DNA from: Guillardia theta CCMP2712
Lineage: Eukaryota; Protista; Cryptophyta
Length of the DNA: 64,000 nucleotides
Direction: 5' to 3'
Assembly (NCBI RefSeq): GCF_000315625.1
Contig: NW_005434654.1
Location: 128,273 to 192,272, forward strand
Shown: one piece after another, positions 2,197-47,500 of the stretch
Numbering within the stretch: position 1 is the first letter of the stretch
How the letters are laid out: every line of letters begins with the position of its first letter
Made by a program: the position numbers and the translations under genes
The notes under the pieces: generated by a model
What the model saw: only the letters and a program-made list of their open reading frames with translations
Told to the model about the DNA's origin: nothing
Database searches by the model: none

Positions 2197-2689
2197 CACT
2201 CGATGAAGTGACAGAGCTTACAGGGTTCTAACAGGTTGAGAACTTAAGAGGTGATGAAATACTTGAAGATACTTTCATGACAACATGATCAGAAGGTTCT
2301 GTTGCAATACCCCAAGACTTGCTCTTCCATGAACACTTGCTCTTCGATGCACCGGTCTCATCGTCAACACTTCCTGGTCTGTACTTGCATCCTGGTCTTG
2401 TTTTCTCTGTGGAGTCTGCTAATCTCTTCGCTCTGCTTCTCACTTGGTCTTCGTTGAAGTTCCTTCTTCCTCCTCCTCCTCTCCTCAGCTCTCTGCCTGC
2501 CGCAGCTGCTGCATACTCCTTGCATGCGACGCCATTAGGCGTATCCGGCTCTAGAGAGCTTTCAAATTCTTCTGTCTATTTTCAAATAATGATGGTAAGG
2601 ACTTTCAAAAGTCCAAGTCTGCCTCAGGCAAGCAACATGGCCCAGATTGCGCGCGAAACTGATCAGAATGTAGGGCAGGGAGGTGAAGA

Positions 2690-2740
2690 GGAGGAGGAAG
2701 AGAGGAGAGGAGGGGAGAGGAGAGGAGAGGAGAGGAGATA
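2690..2740. repeat. Purine-rich (GAGAG/GAG)n microsatellite
   Basis: gaggaggaagagaggagaggaggggagaggagaggagaggagagga. Confidence 0.85.
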
Positions 2741-3196
2741 GAAGTTATAGAGTGGAGCTAGAGCAGGGAGCGAGGGCAAAGGATGCAGTTGGACGCCAAG
2801 AGGGTTTTCCTCCCTCTGCTCTCACGCCATGCTCTTGATCCATTCCTTTCCTGTTTCTTCCTTGCACGCCCTACTTTTAGAGAAGCGCCTCACACCTACC
2901 TCCAATCGTCCGGCATCAGATCTGCATCTTTAGCCTGCATTGCCCTCTCAAACGTTTCTGGTCTTCCCTAAAGCTTTTGACATAGGCGGGAAGCAGGAGG
3001 CAATGTCTCGGATGACTGAGAGGCAGATCTTGAAGATGAGCTCTATGGAGTTCGAGGTCAGCCCAACCATTGTATCAACTAGATCACTCTCCTCATCGTC
3101 CTGCAGATCCGAAATGCTCTGGGCAACATGGGGTTTTCTGCAGACGACATCTCTGCTGCCATCAAGAAGACGGGAGGGAAGAGCGTCGAAGCAGCC

Positions 3197-30350: not shown

Positions 30351-31326
30351 TCAACTTGCCAAGCAAAAGTGTGGTTGAAGGACCGGTAGTAGACCTTCAC
30401 TCAGCTAAAAGTGTTTGGACCGTTCAGCTAAAAAGTGACTAATTTTTTCTTTTTAAAGGCCCAACCCACCTGAACCTACCCACCCCTGCTGATGAATGGA
30501 AAATGTAGGGAGAAACAGGGGTTGGTCTTGTACACGAAATGTTCCTCAGGGTGGGTGAGACGTGCTGAGCAGTAAATTTGAAATTGATAGCTAAGGGTGT
30601 GAGCTATGGAGTTTCTGACCGTATCCCACTTAACAAATGGGCCATCTAGGGAGTCAGAGATGTACTGCTTGATCCTGTTTTGAGAGTTGCTCGGAGAGGA
30701 GGTAGTGGTGGCTTTCTGTTGGGGACCAATCTGGCGGTGAGAGATTTTTGCCAGCATGGCAATGTAGTGCAGGAGTGTAGACTAGTCATCGTGAGACTTG
30801 GTTGTGCATTCGTTCTGATATGAACCTCTGTCCAAATTTATGTCACAATAGATAGTTACAGTCGTGTTGCATCAATTCAACACGCCACCAGCATTGTTTA
30901 TACTTCATTTGTGGCCTATTTTGGCGCTAGATTTTTAGTAACTCAACAACAAACTAGTCTTTTCGTTTGAAGACGTAGGGCATTTTGAACCCAAACTAAG
31001 ACGATAGATCATCTACCTTCGCTACAAGTTTGCGATCTGTCATGATCTTCTCTTTATTTTTATCGACGTGGTCGTAGTGTTTCTTCCTTTTTACTTGTGT
31101 GTTCATTTTTGTTTATCGCTGGACATATGAGAATGACGTCGAATTCATGAGTGTCACAACTTTTCTATTTCTGAGACAATTTTATTCTTTTCGATGTGAT
31201 AGAAGGTTGCAAGCCCATGATCTTACACAAACTTGGGAGTACTGTGACACAAAACTCCGCTTTGCAGAATTGCAATGACAGGAAAATACCTCTTTGACAG
31301 TTTTTCACAGGTTGTATGCAACCAAG

Positions 31327-34300
31327 ATGTTGAGCTTATGGCGATCAAGATTCTTTCTTGCGGTTTGGGTCCTCATTCCGGCGCTTGTGTCCGCGACTTG
31401 GGATTGTCCAGATCACGCAAGGAAGGCAGATCCAAGAGCCCCTGATGACGTCGCTTATTGCTTCTGCGAACCCGGATATTTTGGAGACTTGCTTCTACCT
31501 GGTTCTTCTTGCCAGCCATGCCCCGGAAATTCTTCATACTTTGGTAATGATACATTGACGATCGGTGCATGCCAATGTGATAGCTACTTCTATGGCGATC
31601 TCGTTGCGAACGGCAGCTGTACACCCTGCCCTCGTGGACTTTTCTCGATGCCAGGCAGCAAAAGCATTGGAGAATGTATGTGTCTAAAGATCATGGAGAT
31701 GCAAACATATACTAATCAGTCGAGTCAATGTGTGTGTCCAAGAAATTATTTCCATAACCAAGAAACAAACAAAGAAGCAGTGGAGTTGACATACGAGCCA
31801 CAGTCAAGCTCTGGAAACGCGATCGAATTAATACAAAGATCCCATCCAGCAATGATAATAGCCGCAACAAGAATCATAACAACTAAACTGACGGCAACTG
31901 GATCAGCAATGTACGGAACAAACTTCTACCTCCGAGCCGAGGACGACCTAGGAGTCTTCGACATCTGGTCGGACTCCGGGACGTACGTGAACCTCCCTCA
32001 GGGCGTGCTGTACCTGCCACGCGGACGAGGAGCCGGGCTGAAGCGGCTCTTCCTGGACTCATACCCGTATCAGTCTTGGTCCTTCCATGGGGTGTACGGG
32101 AGCGTCGCGGTCCAGGCCAGGCGAGTCTGCGTAGCCTGTCCCGAGGGGACGTACTCGCTAGCAGGAGACTCGAGCTGTAGGCCTTGCCCGGGTAACTCTA
32201 CTGCTCTACGTAACCTGACAGGGTCTAACGCGACGGGCTGCGTCTGCAAGCTAGGCTACCGCGAAGACCGGTCGGGAGGGAAGCTGAGCTGTGTAGCGTG
32301 TCCGGCGGGGGCGCGAGCAGGAGTCGGGTCGGAGGAGTGTCGGTGCTGGGGCGGGATGGTCGAGACGCGAGGAGCCGGCGGGGAGCTTGTAGGGTGCGGG
32401 TGCCCCGCGGGTACAGAGGCGGGGAGGAGCTTCGCAGACTGGAATAAGTACGCGGGAGTCGTATACGCCAGCCCCTACATGTCGTACTCGTACATGTCCG
32501 AGGAGCTCGTGCTGGAGTCGCTAGCGGCAGACATGGCCAGACTGATACAGGACGCCGGGGAGCTAGAGGGCCTGGTCAACAGCAGCAAGCCGATCCCTTA
32601 CATGGTGTTGCCGCAGCAGTCGTACTGGTACTACCCGTCGTACATGCAGGACATAGCGGCGATATCCAACTACACGATGAGAGGAGGGACGCTGGTGACG
32701 ATGGGCGACGGGGTACAGGACCTGCTGGCGCAGGCCTTCGGGATAGCAAGGCCGGCGCTGTCTTGGACTTCGTCGGAAGCTCGGCTCAACAACGCGAGCG
32801 CAGCAGGGACGGCGTTCGAGGGGGGCCCGAGCTCGCTGTCGTACTGGTACGCTGTACGCTGGCCACTGTCGGGGCTGCCGCCGGGCGCAAGGAGCATGTA
32901 CGACGACGGGTGGTACTCGTCGGCGGTAGTGATGAGGGTAGGGAGGGGTCAGGTAGTGTGGCTGGCGTACGACGACGGGCTGGCGTCGACGGGGGCGTGG
33001 CAGGAGGTACTGAGGCGGGCGGTGGAGGCCGGGGGCCCCTGCGAGTCATGCGGGGCAGGGACGTACCGGAGCGAGTCGGAGCAGAGCTGCACGGCGTGTC
33101 CAGGGAACTCGACGTCAGAGATCGGGTCGAGGTCCATGGAGGAGTGCGAGTGCAAGGCGGGGTACTACGGAGAGGCTCGGAGGAACGGAGGGAAGGGTTG
33201 CCAGGCTTGTCCGCCGGGCGCCTACTCCCCGAGGGGAAGCCGCAACGCTAGCAGCTGCCGATGCTCGGCAGGGACGACGTGGTTAGGGAGTGTCAACGGG
33301 TCGGCGCTGGCATGCCTGTGTCCGGATAATCATTACGGCCCGGTGGAGCATAGCACGGGGATCGACGTGACCTTGTATCCTGCGACGTCGGACGACAACA
33401 TGATCAGCTTCAGAGACGCCGGGGGCAGGACTTGGCTACAGACAGAGCTGGTAGAGTCGATCGACACAAGGAGGCTGCAGGGCTTCGGTCACTCTCACTC
33501 GGGCACACCGATCGACTTCTACCTCCGAGCCGAGGACGACCTAGGAGTCTTCGACATCTGGTCGGACTCCGGGACGTACGTGAACCTCCCTCAGGGCGTG
33601 CTGTACCTGCCACGCGGACGAGGAGCCGGGCTGAAGCGGCTCTTCCTGGACTCATACCCGTATCAGTCTTGGTCCTTCCATGGGGTGTACGGGAGCGTCG
33701 CGGTCCAGGCCAGGCGAGTCTGCGTAGCCTGTCCCGAGGGGACGTACTCGCTAGCAGGAGACTCGAGCTGTAGGCCTTGCCCGGGTAACTCTACTGCTCT
33801 ACGTAACCTGACAGGGTCTAACGCGACGGGCTGCGTCTGCAAGCTAGGCTACCGCGAAGACCGGTCGGGAGGGAAGCTGAGCTGTGTAGCGTGTCCGGCG
33901 GGGGCGCGAGCAGGAGTCGGGTCGGAGGAGTGTCGGTGCTGGGGCGGGATGGTCGAGACGCGAGGAGCCGGCGGGGAGCTTGTAGGGTGCGGGTGCCCCG
34001 CGGGTACAGAGGCGGGGAGGAGCTTCGCAGACTGGAATAAGTACGCGGGAGTCGTATACGCCAGCCCCTACATGTCGTACTCGTACATGTCCGAGGAGCT
34101 CGTGCTGGAGTCGCTAGCGGCAGACATGGCCAGACTGATACAGGACGCCGGGGAGCTAGAGGGCCTGGTCAACAGCAGCAAGCCGATCCCTTACATGGTG
34201 TTGCCGCAGCAGTCGTACTGGTACTACCCGTCGTACATGCAGGACATAGCGGCGATATCCAACTACACGATGAGAGGAGGGACGCTGGTGACGATGGGCG

Positions 34301-37300
34301 ACGGAGTGCAGGACCTGCTGGCGCAGGCCTTCGGGATAGCAAGGCCGGCGCTGTCTTGGACTTCGTCGGAAGCTCGGCTCAACAACGCGAGCGCAGCAGG
34401 GACGGCGTTCGAGGGGGGCCCGAGCTCGCTGTCGTACTGGTACGCTGTACGCTGGCCACTGTCGGGGCTGCCGCCGGGCGCAAGGAGCATGTACGACGAC
34501 GGGTGGTACTCGTCGGCGGTAGTGATGAGGGTAGGGAGGGGTCAGGTAGTGTGGCTGGCGTACGACGACGGGCTGGCGTCGACGGGGGCGTGGCAGGAGG
34601 TACTGAGGCGGGCGGTGGAGGCCGGGGGCCCCTGCGAGTCATGCGGGGCAGGGACGTACCGGAGCGAGTCGGAGCAGAGCTGCACGGCGTGTCCAGGGAA
34701 CTCGACGTCAGAGATCGGGTCGAGGTCCATGGAGGAGTGCGAGTGCAAGGCGGGGTACTACGGAGAGGCTCGGAGGAACGGAGGGAAGGGTTGCCAGGCT
34801 TGTCCTAGTAATTCTGTCTTGAGTAATCGATCAGGGCTTTTATCTCTTTCGGATTGTTTGTGTGCTTCTGGATACTATATGGATCTTGTCACGTTTCAAG
34901 GCTGCATAGCCTGTCCGTTGGGCTCGGATTCGTTAGTTGGTGGAATTGGGATGGAAAGTTGTACATGTGTTTCTGGTTTTGTTCCTTCAAGGAGTGGCAA
35001 TGGATCTTTGAAATGTGACTGTCCACGAGGATTTGTTGAATCCAGATATGGTGGGGGAAATGAGCATTTTCGGGAGTTATCTATTTATCCAGACAAGGCT
35101 GATGGGAACATCATTGTCTTTGATCTTAATCAACCATCGACAGATCAAATCCTGCGTTCAATTTCAACTACATCCTTGTCCGGCATTGCCCATTCACATT
35201 CACTTCTTCCGGTTTCCATTTCACTGGTAGTCTATGACAGGTCTGGGAGACACCTGGTATGGAACAAAACAATCACGTGGACCAAAATCCCTCAGATTGA
35301 AATTGAACTGATAAACGCTAATGAATGGAGATGGAATGTAAAGCGAATTCAAATGGAAAGTTACCCACCACAAACTGACACATTCCATAGAGTTCAAGGC
35401 ATTTTAAACCTGAGAATGTCTGAAATGTGCAGCCCTTGCGAAGAGGGATCATATTCTTTCCCTGGCGACAAACATTGTAGCATCTGCCCAACAAACACAA
35501 CAACGATTCCGGCGTGGGCAGGGTCTAACGCGACGGGCTGCGTCTGCAAGCTAGGCTACCGCGAAGACCGGTCGGGAGGGAAGCTGAGCTGTGTAGCGTG
35601 TCCGGCGGGGGCGCGAGCAGGAGTCGGGTCGGAGGAGTGTCGGTGCTGGGGCGGGATGGTCGAGTCGCGAGGAGCCGGCGGGGAGCTTGTAGGGTGCGGG
35701 TGCCCCGCGGGTACAGAGGCGGGGAGGAGCTTCGCAGACTGGAATAAGTACGCGGGAGTCGTATACGCCAGCCCCTACATGTCGTACTCGTACATGTCCG
35801 AGGAGCTCGTGCTGGAGTCGCTAGCGGCAGACATGGCCAGACTGATACAGGACGCCGGGGAGCTAGAGGGCCTGGTCAACAGCAGCAAGCCGATCCCTTA
35901 CATGGTGTTGCCGCAGCAGTCGTACTGGTACTACCCGTCGTACATGCAGGACATAGCGGCGATATCCAACTACACGATGAGAGGAGGGACGCTGGTGACG
36001 ATGGGCGACGGGGTACAGGACCTGCTGGCGCAGGCCTTCGGGATAGCAAGGCCGGCGCTGTCTTGGACTTCGTCGGAAGCTCGGCTCAACAACGCGAGCG
36101 CAGCAGGGACGGCGTTCGAGGGGGGCCCGAGCTCGCTGTCGTACTGGAACGCTGTACGCTGGCCACTGTCGGGGCTGCCGCCGGGCGCAAGGAGCATGTA
36201 CGACGACGGGTGGTACTCGTCGGCGGTAGTGATGAGGGTAGGGAGGGGTCAGGTAGTGTGGCTGGCGTACGACGACGGGCTGGCGTCGACGGGGGCGTGG
36301 CAGGAGGTACTGAGGCGGGCGGTGGAGGCCGGGGGCCCCTGCGAGTCATGCGGGGCAGGGACGTACCGGAGCGAGTCGGAGCAGAGCTGCACGGCGTGTC
36401 CAGGGAACTCGACGTCAGAGATCGGGTCGAGGTCCATGGAGGAGTGCGAGTGCAAGGCGGGGTACTACGGAGAGGCTCGGAGGAACGGAGGGAAGGGTTG
36501 CCAGGCTTGTCCTCCGGGCGCCTACTCCCCGAGGGGAAGCCGCAACGCTAGCAGCTGCCGATGCTCGGCAGGGACGACGTGGTTAGGGAGTGTCAACGGG
36601 TCGGCGCTGGCATGCCTGTGTCCGGATAATCATTACGGCCCGGTGGAGCATAGCACGGGGATCGACGTGACCTTGTATCCTGCGACGTCGGACGACGACA
36701 TGATCAGCTTCAGAGACGCCGGGGGCAGGACTTGGCTACAGACAGAGCTGGTAGAGTCGATCGACACAAGGAGGCTGCAGGGCTTCGGTCACTCTCACTC
36801 GGGCACACCGATCGACTTCTACCTCCGAGCCGAGGACGACCTAGGAGTCTTCGACATCTGGTCGGACTCCGGGACGTACGTGAACCTCCCTCAGGGCGTG
36901 CTGTACCTGCCACGCGGACGAGGAGCCGGGCTGAAGCGGCTCTTCCTGGACTCATACCCGTATCAGTATTTGTCCTTCCATGGGGTGTACGGGAGCGTCG
37001 CGGTCCAGGCCAGGCGAGTCTGCGTAGCCTGTCCCGAGGGGACGTACTCGCTAGCAGGAGACTCGAGCTGTAGGCCTTGCCCGGGTAACTCTACTGCTCT
37101 ACGTAACCTGACAGGGTCTAACGCGACGGGCTGCGTCTGCAAGCTAGGCTACCGCGAAGACCGGTCGGGAGGGAAGCTGAGCTGTGTAGCGTGTCCGGCG
37201 GGGGCGCGAGCAGGAGTCGGGTCGGAGGAGTGTCGGTGCTGGGGCGGGATGGTCGAGACGCGAGGAGCCGGCGGGGAGCTTGTAGGGTGCGGGTGCCCCG

Positions 37301-40300
37301 CGGGTACAGAGGCGGGGAGGAGCTTCGCAGACTGGAATAAGTACGCGGGAGTCGTATACGCCAGCCCCTACATGTCGTACTCGTACATGTCCGAGGAGCT
37401 CGTGCTGGAGTCGCTAGCGGCAGACATGGCCAGACTGATACAGGACGCCGGGGAGCTAGAGGGCCTGGTCAACAGCAGCAAGCCGATCCCTTACATGGTG
37501 TTGCCGCAGCAGTCGTACTGGTACTACCCGTCGTACATGCAGGACATAGCGGCGATATCCAACTACACGATGAGAGGAGGGACGCTGGTGACGATGGGCG
37601 ACGGGGTACAGGACCTGCTGGCGCAGGCCTTCGGGATAGCAAGGCCGGCGCTGTCTTGGACTTCGTCGGAAGCTCGGCTCAACAACGCGAGCGCAGCAGG
37701 GACGGCGTTCGAGGGGGGCCCGAGCTCGCTGTCGTACTGGTACGCTGTACGCTGGCCACTGTCGGGGCTGCCGCCGGGCGCAAGGAGCATGTACGACGAC
37801 GGGTGGTACTCGTCGGCGGTAGTGATGAGGGTAGGGAGGGGTCAGGTAGTGTGGCTGGCGTACGACGACGGGCTGGCGTCGACGGGGGCGTGGCAGGAGG
37901 TACTGAGGCGGGCGGTGGAGGCCGGGGGCCCCTGCGAGTCATGCGGGGCGGGGACGTACCGGAGCGAGTCGGAGCAGAGCTGCACGGCGTGTCCAGGGAA
38001 CTCGACGTCAGAGATCGGGTCGAGGTCCGTGGAGGAGTGCGAGTGCAAGGCGGGCTACTACGGAGAGGCTCGGAGGAACGGAGGGAAGGGTTGCCAGGCT
38101 TGTCCGCCGGGCGCCTACTCCCCGAGGGGAAGCCGCAACGCTAGCAGCTGCCGATGCTCGGCAGGGACGACGTGGTTAGGGAGTGTCAACGGGTCGGCGC
38201 TGGCATGCCTGTGTCCGGATAATCACTACGGCCCGGTGGAGCATAGCACGGGGATCGACGTGACCTTGTATCCTGCGACGTCGGACGACGACATGATCAG
38301 CTTCAGAGACGCCGGGGGCAGGACTTGGCTACAGACAGAGCTGGTAGAGTCGATCGACACAAGGAGGCTGCAGGGCTTCGGTCACTCTCACTCGGGCACA
38401 CCGATCGACTTCTACCTCCGAGCCGAGGACGACCTAGGAGTCTTCGACATCTGGTCGGACTCCGGGACGTACGTGAACCTCCCTCAGGGCGTGCTGTACC
38501 TGCCACGCGGACGAGGAGCCGGGCTGAAGCGGCTCTTCCTGGACTCATACCCGTATCAGTCTTGGTCCTTCCATGGGGTGTACGGGAGCGTCGCGGTCCA
38601 GGCCAGGCGAGTCTGCGTAGCCTGTCCCGAGGGGACGTACTCGCTAGCAGGAGACTCGAGCTGTAGGCCTTGCCCGGGTAACTCTACTGCTCTACGTAAC
38701 CTGACAGGGTCTAACGCGACGGGCTGCGTCTGCAAGCTAGGCTACCGCGAAGACCGGTCGGGAGGGAAGCTGAGCTGTGTAGCGTGTCCGGCGGGGGCGC
38801 GAGCAGGAGTCGGGTCGGAGGAGTGTCGGTGCTGGGGCGGGATGGTCGAGACGCGAGGAGCCGGCGGGGAGCTTGTAGGGTGCGGGTGCCCCGCGGGTAC
38901 AGAGGCGGGGAGGAGCTTCGCAGACTGGAATAAGTACGCGGGAGTCGTATACGCCAGCCCCTACATGTCGTACTCGTACATGTCCGAGGAGCTCGTGCTG
39001 GAGTCGCTAGCGGCAGACATGGCCAGACTGATACAGGACGCCGGGGAGCTAGAGGGCCTGGTCAACAGCAGCAAGCCGATCCCTTACATGGTGTTGCCGC
39101 AGCAGTCGTACTGGTACTACCCGTCGTACATGCAGGACATAGCGGCGATATCCAACTACACGATGAGAGGAGGGACGCTGGTGACGATGGGCGACGGGGT
39201 ACAGGACCTGCTGGCGCAGGCCTTCGGGATAGCAAGGCCGGCGCTGTCTTGGACTTCGTCGGAAGCTCGGCTCAACAACGCGAGCGCAGCAGGGACGGCG
39301 TTCGAGGGGGGCCCGAGCTCGCTGTCGTACTGGTACGCTGTACGCTGGCCACTGTCGGGGCTGCCGCCGGGCGCAAGGAGCATGTACGACGACGGGTGGT
39401 ACTCGTCGGCGGTAGTGATGAGGGTAGGGAGGGGTCAGGTAGTGTGGCTGGCGTACGACGACGGGCTGGCGTCGACGGGGGCGTGGCAGGAGGTACTGAG
39501 GCGGGCGGTGGAGGCCGGGGGCCCCTGCGAGTCATGCGGGGCGGGGACGTACCGGAGCGAGTCGGAGCAGAGCTGCACGGCGTGTCCAGGGAACTCGACG
39601 TCAGAGATCGGGTCGAGGTCCGTGGAGGAGTGCGAGTGCAAGGCGGGCTACTACGGAGAGGCTCGGAGGAACGGAGGGAAGGGTTGCCAGGCTTGTCCGC
39701 CGGGCGCCTACTCCCCGAGGGGAAGCCGCAACGCTAGCAGCTGCCGATGCTCGGCAGGGACGACGTGGTTAGGGAGTGTCAACGGGTCGGCGCTGGCATG
39801 CCTGTGTCCGGATAATCACTACGGCCCGGTGGAGCATAGCACGGGGATCGACGTGACCTTGTATCCTGCGACGTCGGACGACGACATGATCAGCTTCAGA
39901 GACGCCGGGGGCAGGACTTGGCTACAGACAGAGCTGGTAGAGTCGATCGACACAAGGAGGCTGCAGGGCTTCGGTCACTCTCACTCGGGCACACCGATCG
40001 ACTTCTACCTCCGAGCCGAGGACGACCTAGGAGTCTTCGACATCTGGTCGGACTCCGGGACGTACGTGAACCTCCCTCAGGGCGTGCTGTACCTGCCACG
40101 CGGACGAGGAGCCGGGCTGAAGCGGCTCTTCCTGGACTCATACCCGTATCAGTCTTGGTCCTTCCATGGGGTGTACGGGAGCGTCGCGGTCCAGGCCAGG
40201 CGAGTCTGCGTAGCCTGTCCCGAGGGGACGTACTCGCTAGCAGGAGACTCGAGCTGTAGGCCTTGCCCGGGTAACTCTACTGCTCTACGTAACCTGACAG

Positions 40301-42156
40301 GGTCTAACGCGACGGGCTGCGTCTGCAAGCTAGGCTACCGCGAAGACCGGTCGGGAGGGAAGCTGAGCTGTGTAGCGTGTCCGGCGGGGGCGCGAGCAGG
40401 AGTCGGGTCGGAGGAGTGTCGGTGCTGGGGCGGGATGGTCGAGACGCGAGGAGCCGGCGGGGAGCTTGTAGGGTGCGGGTGCCCCGCGGGTACAGAGGCG
40501 GGGAGGAGCTTCGCAGACTGGAATAAGTACGCGGGAGTCGTATACGCCAGCCCCTACATGTCGTACTCGTACATGTCCGAGGAGCTCGTGCTGGAGTCGC
40601 TAGCGGCAGACATGGCCAGACTGATACAGGACGCCGGGGAGCTAGAGGGCCTGGTCAACAGCAGCAAGCCGATCCCTTACATGGTGTTGCCGCAGCAGTC
40701 GTACTGGTACTACCCGTCGTACATGCAGGACATAGCGGCGATATCCAACTACACGATGAGAGGAGGGACGCTGGTGACGATGGGCGACGGGGTACAGGAC
40801 CTGCTGGCGCAGGCCTTCGGGATAGCAAGGCCGGCGCTGTCTTGGACTTCGTCGGAAGCTCGGCTCAACAACGCGAGCGCAGCAGGGACGGCGTTCGAGG
40901 GGGGCCCGAGCTCGCTGTCGTACTGGTACGCTGTACGCTGGCCACTGTCGGGGCTGCCGCCGGGCGCAAGGAGCATGTACGACGACGGGTGGTACTCGTC
41001 GGCGGTAGTGATGAGGGTAGGGAGGGGTCAGGTAGTGTGGCTGGCGTACGACGACGGGCTGGCGTCGACGGGGGCGTGGCAGGAGGTACTGAGGCGGAGT
41101 GTTTTGCTTTCTTCTCCTTGTCGAGACTGTCGATGGGTTCGTCATTTTTCACATCTTTCATGGTTTGTTCCAATTTTCCTGGACATTCGTAGAGAATGCG
41201 ATGCTGATGATGCTTTATCATCACACCGCTTCTTCAGGTCGTCGCTTCCGGATCTTTTTGGGCTAGCCAATTCTAGTTTTTCAGGATTTTTCTTCTATGC
41301 ATACGATGGCGGATCGGTTTTCCAGTCATCTATCATGGATGGTGGCAATGATATGTACGACGGTGGAAACAAGATTATGGTGTCTCAGAGCATGTTTTCG
41401 AACTCCTTGTTCTCGGGCTCAGTTCTTTCGTACGGGACCTATTATTTGGAAGCAGGCTTCGAGCTTTTTGTCAGCCTTCCAAACACATACCCACACGTAA
41501 CCGCGTTGTTCCTGCCAGGAGGTAACGTGAGCATCATTTGTGAGGGAAACACGGGGTCTGACGGGGGGGGCTTGGTAGTGAACTACCTCCTGACCTACAA
41601 CACCTCGATGACGCACGGAACGATCTGGGCAAATATCAACTATGGCGCTGGAGACCCGACGATAGGAGACGTCTGGTTCACCATTGAGTCATCGGCATGG
41701 GGATCTGAGCTGAGGGGTTGGGTAGATGGCCGGAAGGCGAGAGACAACGACAATTACCATCATTATGTCGAGGTGGAGGGAAAGAACCTTGTCTTCTGCA
41801 AGATCTTGCTGTCGAGAGTCAGCGGTCGGATCATCTATCCGTGGGAAATCACTGATTACATCGCACGCTATGCTGGAAGCATTCCCTTCGATCCGCGGGC
41901 AGCGGCGGTGGAGGATGACACGGTAGGGATGCGGTGCCATTTGAACGCGACTTGGGACGAAATCATCCGGGATCGCACCAAGTATATCCAGGGAGGGCTA
42001 GGACTCGAGATGGTGAGAGGCCAGACGGAGGTCTGGCTGTGCGCGTATCAACATGCATGTGCACCGATGGATGGAGATGCCATGTGCTTCAAGTACAATG
42101 AAAGCAGCAAAGAATTCATCCCGTGGGGGAGAAACTCTGACCTGTCCCTGGTTTAA
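31327..42156 (+). CDS. Giant (about 3610 aa) secreted Cys-rich repeat protein with GCC2/GCC3 (ephrin-receptor-like/TNFR-like) modules
   Basis: Uninterrupted 10.8-kb ORF. Signal peptide MLSLWRSRFFLAVWVLIPALVSA. Many C.AC P.G.YS / C..CP.NS.S..GS.S...C.C..GYY modules. Short 3' exons beyond 42156 are possible. Confidence 0.9.
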   Translation: MLSLWRSRFFLAVWVLIPALVSATWDCPDHARKADPRAPDDVAYCFCEPGYFGDLLLPGSSCQPCPGNSSYFGNDTLTIGACQCDSYFYGDLVANGSCTPCPRGLFSMPGSKSIGECMCLKIMEMQTYTNQSSQCVCPRNYFHNQETNKEAVELTYEPQSSSGNAIELIQRSHPAMIIAATRIITTKLTATGSAMYGTNFYLRAEDDLGVFDIWSDSGTYVNLPQGVLYLPRGRGAGLKRLFLDSYPYQSWSFHGVYGSVAVQARRVCVACPEGTYSLAGDSSCRPCPGNSTALRNLTGSNATGCVCKLGYREDRSGGKLSCVACPAGARAGVGSEECRCWGGMVETRGAGGELVGCGCPAGTEAGRSFADWNKYAGVVYASPYMSYSYMSEELVLESLAADMARLIQDAGELEGLVNSSKPIPYMVLPQQSYWYYPSYMQDIAAISNYTMRGGTLVTMGDGVQDLLAQAFGIARPALSWTSSEARLNNASAAGTAFEGGPSSLSYWYAVRWPLSGLPPGARSMYDDGWYSSAVVMRVGRGQVVWLAYDDGLASTGAWQEVLRRAVEAGGPCESCGAGTYRSESEQSCTACPGNSTSEIGSRSMEECECKAGYYGEARRNGGKGCQACPPGAYSPRGSRNASSCRCSAGTTWLGSVNGSALACLCPDNHYGPVEHSTGIDVTLYPATSDDNMISFRDAGGRTWLQTELVESIDTRRLQGFGHSHSGTPIDFYLRAEDDLGVFDIWSDSGTYVNLPQGVLYLPRGRGAGLKRLFLDSYPYQSWSFHGVYGSVAVQARRVCVACPEGTYSLAGDSSCRPCPGNSTALRNLTGSNATGCVCKLGYREDRSGGKLSCVACPAGARAGVGSEECRCWGGMVETRGAGGELVGCGCPAGTEAGRSFADWNKYAGVVYASPYMSYSYMSEELVLESLAADMARLIQDAGELEGLVNSSKPIPYMVLPQQSYWYYPSYMQDIAAISNYTMRGGTLVTMGDGVQDLLAQAFGIARPALSWTSSEARLNNASAAGTAFEGGPSSLSYWYAVRWPLSGLPPGARSMYDDGWYSSAVVMRVGRGQVVWLAYDDGLASTGAWQEVLRRAVEAGGPCESCGAGTYRSESEQSCTACPGNSTSEIGSRSMEECECKAGYYGEARRNGGKGCQACPSNSVLSNRSGLLSLSDCLCASGYYMDLVTFQGCIACPLGSDSLVGGIGMESCTCVSGFVPSRSGNGSLKCDCPRGFVESRYGGGNEHFRELSIYPDKADGNIIVFDLNQPSTDQILRSISTTSLSGIAHSHSLLPVSISLVVYDRSGRHLVWNKTITWTKIPQIEIELINANEWRWNVKRIQMESYPPQTDTFHRVQGILNLRMSEMCSPCEEGSYSFPGDKHCSICPTNTTTIPAWAGSNATGCVCKLGYREDRSGGKLSCVACPAGARAGVGSEECRCWGGMVESRGAGGELVGCGCPAGTEAGRSFADWNKYAGVVYASPYMSYSYMSEELVLESLAADMARLIQDAGELEGLVNSSKPIPYMVLPQQSYWYYPSYMQDIAAISNYTMRGGTLVTMGDGVQDLLAQAFGIARPALSWTSSEARLNNASAAGTAFEGGPSSLSYWNAVRWPLSGLPPGARSMYDDGWYSSAVVMRVGRGQVVWLAYDDGLASTGAWQEVLRRAVEAGGPCESCGAGTYRSESEQSCTACPGNSTSEIGSRSMEECECKAGYYGEARRNGGKGCQACPPGAYSPRGSRNASSCRCSAGTTWLGSVNGSALACLCPDNHYGPVEHSTGIDVTLYPATSDDDMISFRDAGGRTWLQTELVESIDTRRLQGFGHSHSGTPIDFYLRAEDDLGVFDIWSDSGTYVNLPQGVLYLPRGRGAGLKRLFLDSYPYQYLSFHGVYGSVAVQARRVCVACPEGTYSLAGDSSCRPCPGNSTALRNLTGSNATGCVCKLGYREDRSGGKLSCVACPAGARAGVGSEECRCWGGMVETRGAGGELVGCGCPAGTEAGRSFADWNKYAGVVYASPYMSYSYMSEELVLESLAADMARLIQDAGELEGLVNSSKPIPYMVLPQQSYWYYPSYMQDIAAISNYTMRGGTLVTMGDGVQDLLAQAFGIARPALSWTSSEARLNNASAAGTAFEGGPSSLSYWYAVRWPLSGLPPGARSMYDDGWYSSAVVMRVGRGQVVWLAYDDGLASTGAWQEVLRRAVEAGGPCESCGAGTYRSESEQSCTACPGNSTSEIGSRSVEECECKAGYYGEARRNGGKGCQACPPGAYSPRGSRNASSCRCSAGTTWLGSVNGSALACLCPDNHYGPVEHSTGIDVTLYPATSDDDMISFRDAGGRTWLQTELVESIDTRRLQGFGHSHSGTPIDFYLRAEDDLGVFDIWSDSGTYVNLPQGVLYLPRGRGAGLKRLFLDSYPYQSWSFHGVYGSVAVQARRVCVACPEGTYSLAGDSSCRPCPGNSTALRNLTGSNATGCVCKLGYREDRSGGKLSCVACPAGARAGVGSEECRCWGGMVETRGAGGELVGCGCPAGTEAGRSFADWNKYAGVVYASPYMSYSYMSEELVLESLAADMARLIQDAGELEGLVNSSKPIPYMVLPQQSYWYYPSYMQDIAAISNYTMRGGTLVTMGDGVQDLLAQAFGIARPALSWTSSEARLNNASAAGTAFEGGPSSLSYWYAVRWPLSGLPPGARSMYDDGWYSSAVVMRVGRGQVVWLAYDDGLASTGAWQEVLRRAVEAGGPCESCGAGTYRSESEQSCTACPGNSTSEIGSRSVEECECKAGYYGEARRNGGKGCQACPPGAYSPRGSRNASSCRCSAGTTWLGSVNGSALACLCPDNHYGPVEHSTGIDVTLYPATSDDDMISFRDAGGRTWLQTELVESIDTRRLQGFGHSHSGTPIDFYLRAEDDLGVFDIWSDSGTYVNLPQGVLYLPRGRGAGLKRLFLDSYPYQSWSFHGVYGSVAVQARRVCVACPEGTYSLAGDSSCRPCPGNSTALRNLTGSNATGCVCKLGYREDRSGGKLSCVACPAGARAGVGSEECRCWGGMVETRGAGGELVGCGCPAGTEAGRSFADWNKYAGVVYASPYMSYSYMSEELVLESLAADMARLIQDAGELEGLVNSSKPIPYMVLPQQSYWYYPSYMQDIAAISNYTMRGGTLVTMGDGVQDLLAQAFGIARPALSWTSSEARLNNASAAGTAFEGGPSSLSYWYAVRWPLSGLPPGARSMYDDGWYSSAVVMRVGRGQVVWLAYDDGLASTGAWQEVLRRSVLLSSPCRDCRWVRHFSHLSWFVPIFLDIRRECDADDALSSHRFFRSSLPDLFGLANSSFSGFFFYAYDGGSVFQSSIMDGGNDMYDGGNKIMVSQSMFSNSLFSGSVLSYGTYYLEAGFELFVSLPNTYPHVTALFLPGGNVSIICEGNTGSDGGGLVVNYLLTYNTSMTHGTIWANINYGAGDPTIGDVWFTIESSAWGSELRGWVDGRKARDNDNYHHYVEVEGKNLVFCKILLSRVSGRIIYPWEITDYIARYAGSIPFDPRAAAVEDDTVGMRCHLNATWDEIIRDRTKYIQGGLGLEMVRGQTEVWLCAYQHACAPMDGDAMCFKYNESSKEFIPWGRNSDLSLV
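31922..41097 (+). repeat. Intragenic tandem array, 1593-bp (531-aa) unit, six full or partial near-identical copies
   Basis: Copies at 31922-33514, 33515-34805 (partial), 35519-36814 (partial), 36815-38407, 38408-40000 and 40001-41097 (partial). Only scattered SNPs seen between them. Confidence 0.95.
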
Positions 42157-42290: not shown

Positions 42291-42399
42291 TGATAGTGAA
42301 CAATACAAAAGTTGCAATGACAGCATCTATCACCTGACTTCACAGGCTCAACAACCCGAGCCCCCGGACCACTTTGATCACATGAGCCTAGTATGATCA
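42291..42399 (-). ncRNA. Candidate Fanzor omegaRNA scaffold (structured region 3' of the Fanzor ORF)
   Basis: Three consecutive stem-loops about 155-265 nt downstream of the Fanzor stop. The position fits an omegaRNA, but the region could instead be 3' exon/UTR of the convergent giant gene. Confidence 0.3.
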
Positions 42400-42554
42400 A
42401 TCGCTTGAATTACATATGATTAAAATTCTTAGTTTTCCGTCGAAATTATGGATCATTGAAGACCCACGCACCAATATTGTTTTGTGTCTGACTCGTACTT
42501 ATCCTTTCTATGCCTTGAAGAACAGGTTGACGTATAATCAGACTCACGTGTGAT

Positions 42555-43185
42555 TCAAGGCCGTTTCAGAAAATCTGGTCGCGCTGGTAGAGACATGTAG
42601 CACAATAGAATATTCAAAGCAGCATTGATATCACGAGACTTGATACGGTTTTGAATACAATTGGTGGATCTGCACCATTTCAAACCCCGCACCACTGATT
42701 CTTTTTGATTTGTTTGCGTTCCAAATCATACAATTCTTGATGACATTGATTGCAATATTTTGTTGTTCTGAATTCGTCAACTTCCTTCAACTCGAAGAAA
42801 TTCTGACATCGCCTTTTGATCCATTTTACAGGTACTGATTTCTCTCCATGTCCAGTACAACCAATTGATGAATCACCGTATGCAATTATTGGACTTTGAT
42901 CTGAACGATCACCTTTCATCTTCATGAAGAACATATCAATTGCCTTGTGTTTGGGGATATAATTATCAATTTTCAGGCGTGCAAACTTGTTTTGACAACA
43001 ATGTCCAAACAAGATCTTGCTTAGTCTCACCACGGTGTCGATGTATCATTCATAGTGATCCAGCCGATACGTTTTTGCTGACACTCGTGCCATGTCGTTT
43101 GATTCTTCTGTTATGCCTTGTCTCCATTTTTCTAACTTGGCCCTTATTCTGAGTAATATGAGACTCATAATAGTACTGTCTGCGA
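42555..43185 (-). pseudogene. Fanzor1 (TnpB-related RNA-guided nuclease) C-terminal half, disrupted
   Basis: RRQYYYES..(frameshift)..KWRQGI..SAKT..(stop)..KFARLKIDNYI.K.KAIDMFF..PIIAYGD..GEKSVPVK..VDEFRTTKYCNQC..(frameshift)..VRGLKWCRSTNC..SRDINAALNILLCY..RPDFLKRP*. These are the Fanzor1-type RuvC-II Glu, zinc finger and RuvC-III Asp motifs. Confidence 0.88.
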
Positions 43186-43907
43186 ACATCCTCTCTCTAT
43201 CACACTCTCTCTATCACACTCTCTCTATCACACTCTCTCAAGATGTTCAAGTACTGTACTATTCTGTGCAACAAACTTCCAAAACTATATGTTCTATACG
43301 ATTGGACCAGGAGTCCATGACAAGTTGTGATGATTTTCCCATACGCAAACAATCTGACCTCGTAGACATTTTGGGTTTGTTTCACATCATGGATCAGTCT
43401 TGTCTAAAAGCACAAGCGTTTTTGTCAGTGCTGAAGTTACAACCAAATTTTCAGAAAGAAAGGGACAGTTGATAGCATACAGACTGACGGGGTCGCACTC
43501 TGTGTGACGTTCAAGAAGAGAATACACAACGGTACTGATATGTGGTATCGAGCAAATACATGGTCAAGAAAAACCAAAACAATATCGATATACTCGCAGA
43601 CAGTACTATTATGAGTCTCATATTACTCAGAATAAGGGCCAAGTTAGAAAAATGGAGACAAGGCATAACAGAAGAATCAAACGACATGGCACGAGTGTCA
43701 GCAAAAACGTATCGGCTGGATCACTATGAATGATACATCGACACCGTGGTGAGACTAAGCAAGATCTTGTTTGGACATTGTTGTCAAAACAAGTTTGCAC
43801 GCCTGAAAATTGATAATTATATCCCCAAACACAAGGCAATTGATATGTTCTTCATGAAGATGAAAGGTGATCGTTCAGATCAAAGTCCAATAATTGCATA
43901 CGGTGAT
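42872..43907. repeat. Inverted repeat: 314-bp arms (42872-43185 and 43594-43907) with a 408-bp spacer
   Basis: The arms are reverse complements (atcaccgtatg...gtctgcga versus tcgcagac...catacggtgat). The ORF track shows mirrored ORFs 42940..43152+ and 43627..43839-. Confidence 0.95.
43240..43907 (+). pseudogene. Fanzor1 middle part in the opposite orientation, truncated at IAYGD, RuvC-I apparently deleted
   Basis: YSVQQTSKTICSIRLDQ..., VDSIQTDGVALCVTFKK (Fanzor1-type TDGV motif), LICGIEQ..KQYRYTRRQYYYES, and on to IIAYGD. No DPG motif between TDGV and YY. Confidence 0.8.
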
Positions 43908-44551
43908 GTGCGAAAAGGAGTCAGCATTGCTGTGAAGATGCTTCTTTCTGACCCTCCAGCTTCTGTGTGTCCGTCCACCCTGACAGAAGGCAATTGAAAT
44001 GTCAGTGGTAAACCTCGTTGTTCACAGCAAGAGACGACAAGAGACGACTTTCAAGAGGACCAGGAAGAGAAGCAAGAGACGGCACGGGCACAAGCCCTCA
44101 CATGTCATACATCTATCAGGCCCTGAAACTTTGAGGGAGCACAAGTGAAGAAACCAGACGACGACTTATATCTCGACTATAATCAAGATTGATTGCTTGT
44201 CCCTCATCAGCTGCCTGATGTTATAAAAGCGCCAAGAGCTCCGAGTGACTGCCCGACACACCACCAGGCCTTGTGGTAAGCCCTGGGGTGGTAGGGGCTG
44301 GTTTAGAGGGTCCAAGGACCGGGGGGTAAGATCTGACAACTGCTGGTAACAACGGAATACTGCCTGGTGTTGGTGTGCCCCTGGCATGGCCAGGCAAGGC
44401 CGAGAGCAACAGAGGCGGCTGAGAGAAGCATGCAGCGGTTTTGTGAGAGTAGACGAAGTAAGCCAGCCTGATGCAAGTTGCATCATCTCTTTAGGACAGG
44501 CAGAGGCTCACGGACGGTGGAAGCGTCAGCCCCACAACGCATAACTGATAG

Positions 44552-47500
44552 CAATGTCGACAAAACGAAGCAAGACAAGAAGACAGGTTGTGTGCTCGAC
44601 TTGAGCATGACAGGTGGCTGTACGATGAGATTTTGCACGAGGGACGGTTGAAGATTGACATGGGCGAAACTTCCCAGGTCTTGGACTCGTCGGCAAGGAC
44701 CAGAAAGTCCTCGCACGATGAAGGAGGCAGACACGAGAGCATCCCTCATCCGAAAAGAAGCCATGTGCAGGAAGAGGCTGAAGAAATGCCCTCTTGCATT
44801 CGCATTTGCGGTGCTATGCTGCAGAGCTGCGAAAGTTTTCTAGCTTTCTCCAACCTCACAATGGCCTTCATGTCTGACAACAAAATTCATTTCATAGAGC
44901 CTCTGGCTTCCTTGCCAAATCTGAGGCTTCTTGACCTTAGCTCGAACATGGTGCAATTTTGTGCTGGTAATCACAGCAACTCATTTTTCCCGAGATTGAG
45001 CGTTTTATTTTTGCACAACAACCTCGTAAGAAAGTTACCAGATGTCCAGAGCTTTGAGAGAGCAAAACTAATGCGAGTGCTCACCATGTTTGGAAATCCC
45101 ATAGAAGAAGGGAAGGTGGACGCGCTCGAATGTTTCAATCGTTTTCCGTCTCTCCTGCTAGTCGACAACCATGTCAGAGCAGATCACTTCAAGAAACATG
45201 ACTTGCATTTGGCACCAGTTGATTCAAAAACAGTGCTGAGGACATTCTTGAGAAGAAGGTTCAAATCTCGATTGCAAAGGAAGGTCGATCATCTGTTCGA
45301 AATTTTCCGGGACCCAAGTAGAAACATTCACGACTTCGAACACTTTCAAGACATTCTGTCTCAAGTCCATCGCATTAACTCCAACTCGACGCCTTACAAT
45401 ATCATCAGTCGAGTTGCCATGGGGCATTCAGCAAGAACGAAATTCAGAATGCTGTACAGTCACTATCTCATGCCCACCATCACTCTTCAACGATGGCTCT
45501 TGTCGGCTTACTTGCGTCGTCTTGTGCACAGCTTGCTCTCCGGAGGGATAATCCATGACCAGAACATCGCCAAAAAGCTTGCAAAGCTGCCCCTGTCTGA
45601 TGATGACTTGTTGCTTCGAAGCTCAAACCTGACCATTTACTTTCATCCCAAGTATGCTGATGTGATTGAGCAGTTAGCGGCCAAATGGGGAAGCATGCAG
45701 AGCTCCTCTGATTCACCCATCTTGTACTTGTCCAACATTTTCAGCTTCCAACGTGAACGACATAGCGGAGGAAATGAGTTGTTCCGAGCTGTGCTGAGAA
45801 TGCGTCGAAGAGCGAGAACTCTGCAAGAGGCGAGTCACCTTGCGCGATTTCCAGTGAAACGATTCCGCTTGGGAAGATTGACGCATGTTGACACCAAAAC
45901 AAGAACCATTTTCCTTCAACATTTCGAACAGCATCATGGCTTTGATGCACTGCCAAGCTCTCGTTCTCAACACATCTCTCATCGCTTCTTGGTCGTCCTA
46001 AAGTTCAAAGATGAGGCGTCCAGGAATCATTTCATCAACTATATCACTTATCTTAACAGGACCATCAACAGCTCAAGTCAATCATCGATTGGATCAGTCC
46101 ACTTTCTTCTCGGTGAGAGTGTGTTGAGAGTCCATGCTGCTTGTTGCGTTCAAGCGACAGTGAGAAGATGGCTAGAGTGTCGCTCAACGAAGAGAAGCTT
46201 GAAGAAAGCCGTCCTTCTTCTTCGAAGCACGAAATCCATTCAGCACTGGTGGAGATGGACCTGTACTCGTCTGCGTACCGAAGCTCTGGCTTGTCTGGCA
46301 AAAGCTCTGACAGACAACGGGACTTCGACCACGTTGTATTGCATTTCAAACAACTTGAAGCCAAAGTTGTTGTCTCATGACAAAAGCGTCTCGTTTCTTC
46401 CGGAATCAAAGATTTCATTTGTTTTTGATGAGAACGAAGATGTTCAGGTCTTACAACCAGAGCTCGCCTCGTCAAATGGTCGAGGAGTTCTTCCCTCTTG
46501 GGTGGGTCTACAAGTCAGACTAATACCCTGGTTGCCACATGAAGCAAGTCTAAAGAGTCTGCTGACGCAAGGGACCCAGATCGATATAGCAGAAGCTGAG
46601 AGCTTGAAAGATGAAGAAGATCATGCTTTACGGTTTCCGAATCGAAGGTTGTTTGGTTCAATTCCTGTTTTGAAGTTTCACTTCAAATCGAACAACCAAG
46701 CTCGGATCAGAACTGCTCTTCTGTTCATCAAGACTTGGTCCGCGCAGAAAAGAGATCCGATATGGTTGATGAAAGCGACAGATTGCCAGCAGCATCTTAT
46801 GGCTGCTCTCATTCAGTCTGTGTATAGAGGTCACTTGAGCAGGGCGAGATGTCACAGGCTGAGGAATGTTCGTGATGTTTGGAAGATCGATCGTGTTGTG
46901 AGTAGAAGGAAGTTTGTTGAGTTAGAAAAAGCAGTAGAAAGCCAGCGACTGAGGAAAGAGCAAGTCTCTCCTCCCCCTCCCTCTCTTGCTCCTCGCATAG
47001 CAGGGGAAGACATGGGCTTGACAGGAATGACAGCGTTAGATATGACACGTGGCAGCTTGAAGGATAACATGATGAGGGCAAAGCAGTCGTTAGTGGTCTC
47101 TACCAAGTTGGATAAGATCGTTGCGGGCAAGCTGCAGGAAGAGAAGCTGATTCGCAGCAGGCCGAGTATGAAGTTCCATCCCTCTTCTCAGTCTCGAATC
47201 TTCTCGTCCCAGTCTCGAATCTTCTATTCCAATCTCGAGCTGTTCAACCTGAGCAAGCTCGAAGCGTCAGTTGTGGGCAGCCTGAAGGAGGTTGAGCTTG
47301 AGCAGGTCAGAAACAGAATCAAGACGAGGAAAGAAGTGCATCAGAACGTTATGGAGACGGCGAGCGAGTACAGAAGGTGATGTTATCCTCCGGTCTTTCT
47401 TGACTGACATGTCGTCTCAGTTCTTACCTTGAAAAATGCAAGCATGACCGCAAGGTGCAACGAGAACGCGCAGAGGTCATCAAGAGCATCAACAGCCAAC

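Follow-up and report, generated by a model that had tools for sequence, protein, structure and literature searches.

A decayed Fanzor1 locus with two partial, head-to-head gene copies in Guillardia theta

Two partial copies of a Fanzor1 gene lie head to head

A 64 000-nucleotide stretch of the genome of Guillardia theta CCMP2712 (contig NW_005434654.1, positions 128 273–192 272 of the forward strand; called the window below) carries the remains of a gene for the RNA-guided endonuclease Fanzor1, a eukaryotic nuclease of TnpB/Cas12-like type that uses an omegaRNA as guide and is carried by mobile DNA. The Fanzor-like coding remnants occupy ∼1.5 kb between a secreted-protein open reading frame (ORF; 31294–42156, + strand) and a leucine-rich-repeat (LRR) gene (44588–47380, + strand). 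It was found that they extend over 42422–43908 and belong to two partial Fanzor1 gene copies placed head to head on opposite strands, which we regard, with a probability of about 0.9, as a non-functional remnant. The + strand copy (43242–43908), 5'-truncated and internally deleted, covers codons ∼154–530 of a 642-codon gene, and the – strand copy (43190→42422) covers codons ∼425–642, that is the C-terminal third, together with ∼130 nt of 3' tail. The locus is a Fanzor1 relic, as was correctly recognised in the initial annotation.

The initial annotation had joined a series of peptide motifs across frames into one gene. All of these peptides were present: IQTDGVALCVTF is encoded on the + strand at 43477–43512; YRYTRRQYYYES on the + strand at ∼43580–43615, downstream of VLICGIEQ, and partly again on the – strand; IIAYGD twice, at 43890–43907 (+) and 42889–42872 (–); and VDEFRTTKYCNQC, VRGLKWCRSTNC, RDINAALNI and RPDFLKRP followed by a stop exclusively on the – strand, 42781→42555. 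The single linear gene, however, did not stand, because the N-terminal motifs lie on the + strand and the C-terminal ones on the – strand, linked by a perfect inverted repeat. Its left arm (42872–43185) and its right arm (43594–43907, found by repeat search) are each 314 nt long, 100% complementary and separated by a 408-nt spacer, and a 1-nt insertion and a TGA stop codon are identical in both.

Profile and fold comparisons assign the remnant to Fanzor1

A 121-aa piece of the – strand copy (43045–42683) was used as query in a phmmer search of 1.8 billion representative proteins. This gave 372 matches, mostly proteins of ∼600 aa aligned near their C-termini. The best match was P0001, a 598-aa protein of the cryptophyte Hanusia phi (E 1.8e-22), which is the nearest named member of the relic lineage. 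Several relatives passed the threshold of Pfam Cas12f1-like_TNB. A profile hidden Markov model (hmm) was then built from 57 full-length relatives, which had been collected with the piece covering hmm 424–536 alone. The window pieces matched this profile colinearly, at hmm 300–326 (E 1.6e-5), 357–415 (E 1.9e-10), 424–536 (E 2.5e-45) and 538–586 (E 2.4e-18). The matches at hmm 300–326, 357–415 and 538–586 were independent tests, because these pieces had played no role in collecting the relatives. The + copy segment 43532–43908 also matched hmm 424–480 at E 6e-17. The match of fragment 43242–43307 was insignificant (E 4.5), and no significant match to hmm 1–299 was found in the window pieces.

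A second profile, made from 24 of the 57 relatives, was searched against the PDB. It hit SpuFz1 (7e-34), PpFz1 (2e-28) and GtFz1 (1e-16), exclusively Fanzor1 proteins, and none of TnpB, Fanzor2 or Cas12f was found at E ≤ 0.01. The Fanzor1 fold (WED, enlarged REC, RuvC with insertion, zinc-finger/NUC) was tested on the intact relative P0154 (642 aa; its aligned blocks are 88–96% identical to the window in DNA) and not on the relic itself. The AlphaFold2 model of P0154 had a pLDDT (predicted local distance difference test) of 87 and a pTM (predicted template modelling score) of 0.84. With this model, the top seven Foldseek matches were all Fanzor1 (E 1e-20 to 1e-18, TM 0.53–0.72), the next being Cas12f at 3e-6, and Fanzor2 and TnpB ranked below it. 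The colinear profile matches, the PDB matches and the fold of the intact member together bear out the earlier assignment to Fanzor1, with Fanzor2, TnpB and Cas12f at least 12 orders of magnitude worse. Searches of a phage database and of IMG/VR viral contigs found nothing, and the motifs gave no match in the supplements of Saito et al. 2023, as far as the long table cells are shown there.

Intact relatives reveal the lesions of both copies

Metagenome searches returned four contigs (L001–L004) with 85–96% DNA identity to the window by aligned block. L003 carries an intact ORF of 642 codons (1099–3027, encoding P0154) and L004 one of 630 codons (P0155); L002 has one 2-nt insertion, and L001 is rearranged. 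The dN/dS between L003 and L004 was 0.26, indicating that the protein is under purifying selection.

Lesions were mapped by alignment to L003. The + copy corresponds to L003 1558–2689, so that the first 153 codons are missing, and it is truncated at 43908. It starts with an N-terminal (REC-region) fragment at 43242–43307 (L003 1558–1633, 88–92% identity in blocks) and contains four internal deletions: one of 10 nt, one in which 340 nt are replaced by 26 nt (43308–43333), one of 53 nt at 43405/43406 and one of 89 nt at 43531/43532. The 53-nt deletion lies within the segment 43334–43531 (L003 1974–2224), which contains IQTDGVALCVTF and gave the match at hmm 300–326; its part 43449–43531 is 96% identical to L003, at ∼3x read depth. 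The following segment, 43532–43908 (L003 2314–2689), runs from VLICGIEQ through YRYTRRQYYYES to IIAYGD, gave the matches at hmm 357–415 and 424–480, and ends abruptly. The small lesions of the + copy are a 1-nt insertion at 43636 and a change of AGA to TGA at 43731–43733.

The – copy corresponds to L003 2371–3156, its left repeat arm being L003 2376–2689. Its 1-nt insertion at 43143 and TGA at 43048–43046 are the same as in the + copy, and it has in addition a 22-nt deletion at 42699/42698 and small indels in the 3' tail. The main coding piece (42683–43045, –), identified by phmmer and hmm 424–536, comprises the helical insert, the IIAYGD strand, the first zinc-finger CxxC and VDEFRTTK. The C-terminal piece (42555–42725, –; hmm 538–586; 96% identity to L003 2884–3064; ∼7x baseline read depth) comprises the second zinc-finger half (VRGLKWCRSTNC), RuvC-III, RPDFLKRP and the stop codon at 42557–42555. 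In total, the locus has three frameshifts (the 89-nt deletion, the 1-nt insertion and the 22-nt deletion) and one stop (TGA), in agreement with the earlier count of at least two frameshifts and one stop, and with at least seven lesions relative to the intact copies the description of the locus as decayed was well founded.

The segment after ESHITQN (43625–43640) deserves mention on its own. The spacer between AATAA and AAGTTAG has a length of 4 nt in L001, against 5 nt in the window and 6 nt in L002. A programmed shift at this site was considered and rejected: relative to the uninterrupted reading of L003 and L004, the window and L002 break the frame by independent indels and L001 keeps it, as at an indel hotspot.

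It was also considered whether the locus might be a live gene whose frame changes are short introns, since many Fanzor genes carry introns (PMC10530073). The close relatives L003 and L004, however, are uninterrupted ORFs of 642 and 630 codons, so that introns were ruled out as the source of the frame changes and the locus cannot encode a nuclease by means of them. Each frame change is an insertion or deletion relative to L003 and L004, the loss of the catalytic Asp included; the pieces are divided between the two strands, and codons 1–153 are missing. An intron-containing live gene thus has next to no probability, and the relic is retained as the reading of the locus.

Catalytic residues and domains are partly lost

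In the 24-member alignment, D401 (of IDPG) and E563 (of DEF) are invariant and D618 (of RDxNAA) is nearly invariant. These residues of P0154 correspond to the catalytic residues D383, E541 and D606 of SpuFz1 (PMC10432273). The codon of the RuvC-I Asp (D401, in IIAIDPGRN) is gone, as it lay inside the 89 nt (L003 2225–2313) that are missing at 43531/43532; the gap of the RuvC-I DPG segment, which had been placed near 43525–43535 from the letters alone, could thus be given exactly. 'GIE' at 43550–43558 was tried as a mutated RuvC-I and discarded, because it aligns with 'GVE/GLE', which in P0001, P0154 and the profile comes after IDPG.

In Fanzor proteins RuvC-II is rearranged, the canonical Glu being lost and an alternative Glu lying downstream (PMC10530073). 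Accordingly to this pattern in the relic, the IIAYGD strand is without Glu, and the Glu of VDEF lies ∼33 residues downstream. This alternative RuvC-II Glu is kept in VDEFRTTK (codon 42775–42773, –), aligned to E563, and the RuvC-III Asp is kept in RDINAALNI (codon 42632–42630, –), aligned to D618; both had been reported to remain, and do. The zinc-finger cysteines in YCNQC and WCRSTNC are present, the frames of the two halves are separated by the 22-nt deletion (L003 2862–2883), and the Pfam TNB domain scored only E 0.078 on the piece. The N-terminal WED/REC half is lost, with codons 1–153 missing and ∼110 further codons deleted.

No reading of the locus gives a nuclease: RuvC-I and the N-terminal WED/REC half are gone, the zinc finger is broken in frame and the RNA-like structure at the 3' end is degraded (see below). 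Judged from the sequence, RNA-guided cleavage dependent on a target-adjacent motif (TAM) would be excluded in practice for the window copy, since RuvC-I is lost.

The inverted repeat is taken as real

A chimeric join could produce arms that are 100% identical over just the stretch where two pieces overlap, as they are here, which raised the possibility that the 314-nt repeat is an assembly artefact, made from a chimeric fold-back read or from collapsed paralogues, and that the true locus is a single linear decayed copy. Neither whole arm is spanned by Logan unitigs, and the read depth of the arms is only ∼1.3x baseline; both points speak for an artefact. Against this, the junction of the right arm with the unique flank (43907/43908) is bridged by contigs of runs X1 and X2, which come from two studies (2011 and 2021), and the junction 43185/43186 is bridged by one contig (run X2). 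The remaining two junctions represent native gene continuity, as in L003. Furthermore, the 38-nt reads of a chromatin immunoprecipitation sequencing (ChIP-seq) run from a third study covered every bin without joints or loose ends, and the head-to-head architecture is found again in L001, an independent metagenome contig. An assembly artefact was hence judged highly improbable, and the inverted repeat is taken as real.

Several observations nevertheless weigh against the reading of the locus as two dead Fanzor1 copies head to head. The support for the inner, native junctions (42871/42872 and 43593/43594) consists only of colinearity with L003 and of 38-nt reads that cover them without a break, with no bridging contig listed. 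At 43048 (mirror position 43731), 8 of 13 ChIP-seq reads had T in place of A, which restores AGA (Arg) as in L002 and L003, so that one arm, one strain or a paralogue may lack the TGA stop. Searched singly, none of the pieces reached a Pfam gathering threshold (the best was Cas12f1-like_TNB at E 0.078), and the PDB match was marginal (Parasitella Fanzor1, PpFz1, E 0.87); it was because of these sub-threshold results that full-length relatives were collected and a profile built. Finally, the origin by fold-back proposed below is drawn from the architecture only.

Paralogues without the deletions are present in the genome

In the ChIP-seq DNA run, which bears the same species label, the depth was ∼6–8 per orientation on the flanks, ∼54 at 42572–42705 and ∼23 at 43376–43509, and most reads in the high-depth segments carried variant bases. 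Logan unitigs over these segments had 5–19x the depth of the flanking unitigs. The multi-copy unitigs departed from the window at specific points. Beyond 43529 they read on into the 30-mer TGAGACAGACAATACTACTACAAAGAAAAG, which aligns to L002 starting at 1164 with a single mismatch. At 42698 they run into CACTTCGTC; its reverse complement, GACGAAGTG, occurs in L002 and belongs to the 22 nt that the window has lost. At 42422 they departed from the window and continued as L003. The unitigs thus leave the window at its lesions, implying that the genome contains ∼5–19 paralogues without the 89-nt and 22-nt deletions. It had been suggested that intact members of the family may exist elsewhere in the genome. 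This is supported indirectly, by the paralogues free of these two deletions (5–19 by depth) and by the intact ORFs of 642 and 630 aa in metagenome contigs, with 85–96% DNA identity by segment.

Given these paralogues, the inverted repeat might act as a hairpin-RNA locus, in which double-stranded RNA from both arms feeds small-RNA silencing of the 5–19 Fanzor paralogues. The arms are perfect over 314 nt around a 408-nt loop and match a family with multiple copies in the genome, and such identity amid decay would fit maintenance; a few RNA-seq reads lie on 42438–42705 and 42974–43241. Recent duplication or gene conversion, however, explains perfect arms equally well. The RNA signal amounts to only 18 reads on the 4-kb stretch, drawn from ∼6% of one run; 16 of them fit only partly, and they may stem from paralogues, and no sequencing run recorded as RNA was found to contain the stretch. 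In addition, the paralogues are only ∼90% identical in the arm region, as follows from an arm depth near baseline. A working hairpin locus was on balance considered improbable, and the arms are treated here as parts of the relic.

The 3' region and the ends of the element

In L003, the 3' region (2972–3190), which comprises the last 51 nt of the ORF and ∼165 nt downstream, folded with a z-score of –3.5, and none of 200 shuffled sequences folded as well. The intact copies (L003 2972–3190, L002 1915–2067) have a terminal hairpin as well as a long one that directly follows the stop codon, and the alignment of three 3' sequences contained one compensatory pair. An Rfam search of the 3' region gave no match. 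The folding makes it plausible that the L003 region is an omegaRNA scaffold, a predicted candidate whose position is comparable to that of the GtFz1 omegaRNA, which overlaps 17 codons (PMC10432273). The corresponding tail of the – copy (42422–42554, –; L003 3028–3156, 91–96% identity) has a 5-nt insertion at 42513–42517 and a 1-nt deletion. This candidate scaffold region is degraded in the window: its z-score was +0.11, with the 5-nt insertion in a loop, broken pairs and a lost terminal hairpin arm.

In the window, neither the family homology nor the multi-copy read signal extends beyond ∼42422, so that 42291–42399 is unique flank outside the element. At its 3' end, the family runs past this point of window divergence, and the three other contigs give no clean end. 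Sequence upstream of the family 5' end is available among the contigs from L003 only, and no convincing terminal inverted repeats were found in L003. The region upstream of its intact ORF (700–1090) contains an 88-nt tandem duplication (780–866 and 868–954) and ∼130 nt of low-complexity repeats of CCCT and CCGCCTT type; the microsatellite at the window junction is likewise CT-rich.

Origin of the head-to-head arrangement

In L003 positions, the order in the window is inverted [2371→3156], junction, [1558→2370][2371→2689]. The junction (43186–43241), at the inner end of the left arm, was delimited by repeat search and by comparison with L001 and L003, and contains a 14-nt microsatellite, (CTCTCTCTATCACA)n, at 43191–43239. 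The L003 positions that it joins are no later than 1558 on one side and no later than 2371 on the other. The most likely source of the arrangement would be a fold-back inverted duplication of one copy. In such a scheme, a break would have occurred near gene position ∼460 (L003 1537–1558), followed by intrastrand priming at ∼1270 (L003 2364–2371); the 3' part would then have been copied in reverse, and the original 3' end lost at a later time.

Fold-back (palindromic) inverted duplications arise after a double-strand break by microhomology-primed synthesis. The window resembles them in its head-to-head copies and in a single-copy spacer contiguous with one arm, and L001 has GTAT microhomology at its junction. 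The window differs in that its junction has been overwritten by the microsatellite, and we infer the mechanism from the architecture only.

The timing of decay was estimated from codons at which L002–L004 agree. The window branch had 23 non-synonymous changes (one of them the stop) to 17 synonymous ones, giving an omega of ∼0.36 at ∼3.8 non-synonymous sites per synonymous site, and the omega between the window and L003 was 0.30. The branch value suggested that constraint had acted on the copy through most of its separate history and that the decay of the gene would be recent.

It was observed that L001, an ENA metagenome contig, has nearly the same head-to-head junction. The contig is 86–89% identical to the window, and its junction, within positions 1859–2414, joins the reverse complement of L003 ...1537 to 2364..., with the 4-nt GTAT microhomology exactly at the join. 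L001 is 93–95% identical to the intact-copy group L002–L004, compared with 89% to the window. Because L001 groups with L002–L004 and the window branch was constrained, the two junctions may be independent. A test of shared derived sites for common ancestry of the window and L001 was uninformative, giving 2 sites versus 2 for the control pairing. The near coincidence of the junctions could reflect an old junction with copies homogenised within genomes, or a rearrangement that recurred. That the same head-to-head rearrangement formed more than once in this Fanzor1 lineage seems unlikely. If it did, it would point to a site-specific break hotspot in the element, e.g. self-cleavage or a transposition intermediate, repeatedly giving fold-back 'double' elements, and the near-identical junction in an independently sampled contig hints at such a hotspot.

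Flanking genes

Pfam scans of the flanking genes found no transposase, in line with the earlier remark that none is seen nearby. The upstream ORF (31294–42156) is uninterrupted over 3620 codons, consists of near-identical units of ∼530 aa and stops 266 nt short of the relic; Pfam Ephrin_rec_like is matched by its C-terminal part (E 5e-12). Within the LRR gene, contigs of two older runs differ from the window at 11–15 positions per ∼400 nt over 44566–45500, and the flank adjoining the relic is identical. The differences in the LRR gene look like haplotype or strain variation.

Comparison with known Fanzor systems

The relic alone matters little. Genomes with the family commonly contain partial or dead Fanzor copies, and Fanzor1 of cryptophyte-type algae has already been characterised both biochemically and structurally (GtFz1). 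The locus does provide a base-level example of the death of an element, with deletions, a probable fold-back duplication and growth of a microsatellite at the junction. It also led to an uncharacterised Fanzor1 lineage that has intact members of 630–642 aa, purifying selection and a well-folded 3' non-coding region, and the members of this lineage are candidates in a search for compact eukaryotic RNA-guided nucleases.

Partial Fz loci occur commonly, and neither inverted repeats (IRs) nor a transposase are present at GtFz1 loci (PMC10432273); the window is likewise without a transposase or such IRs near the locus. A parallel is offered by the partial or 'ghost' Fz loci of Spizellomyces punctatus (Saito et al. 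2023, PMC10432273), which likewise belong to a multi-copy family with many partial or degraded genes. The S. punctatus ghost loci, however, have intact IRs and a working omegaRNA and no ORF, whereas in the window the 3' RNA-like region is degraded (z-score of +0.11 versus –3.5) and no IRs were found.

TnpB (of IS200/IS605 and IS607), Fanzor2 and Cas12f have the RuvC–zinc-finger core and a 3'-encoded guide RNA in common with the relic family, but their structural matches to P0154 were far weaker (E 3e-6 or worse, TMq ≤0.3). The solved Fanzor1 proteins, SpuFz1 of S. punctatus (8GKH, 9CEU–9CEZ), PpFz1 of Parasitella parasitica (9CF0–3) and GtFz1 of G. theta (9CER–T), resemble the relic family both by profile and by fold. 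They also have the same order of motifs: the TDG strand, IDPG (RuvC-I), the helical insert, the AYG strand, in which the canonical Glu is absent, DEF(R/K)T with the alternative Glu, the CxxC...C zinc finger and RDxNAAxNI (RuvC-III). In contrast to them, the window copy is dead, lacking RuvC-I and the N-terminal half and having a broken zinc finger. The sequence identity to the solved proteins is only 13–17%, and the relic family is a separate Fanzor1 lineage, distinct from them.

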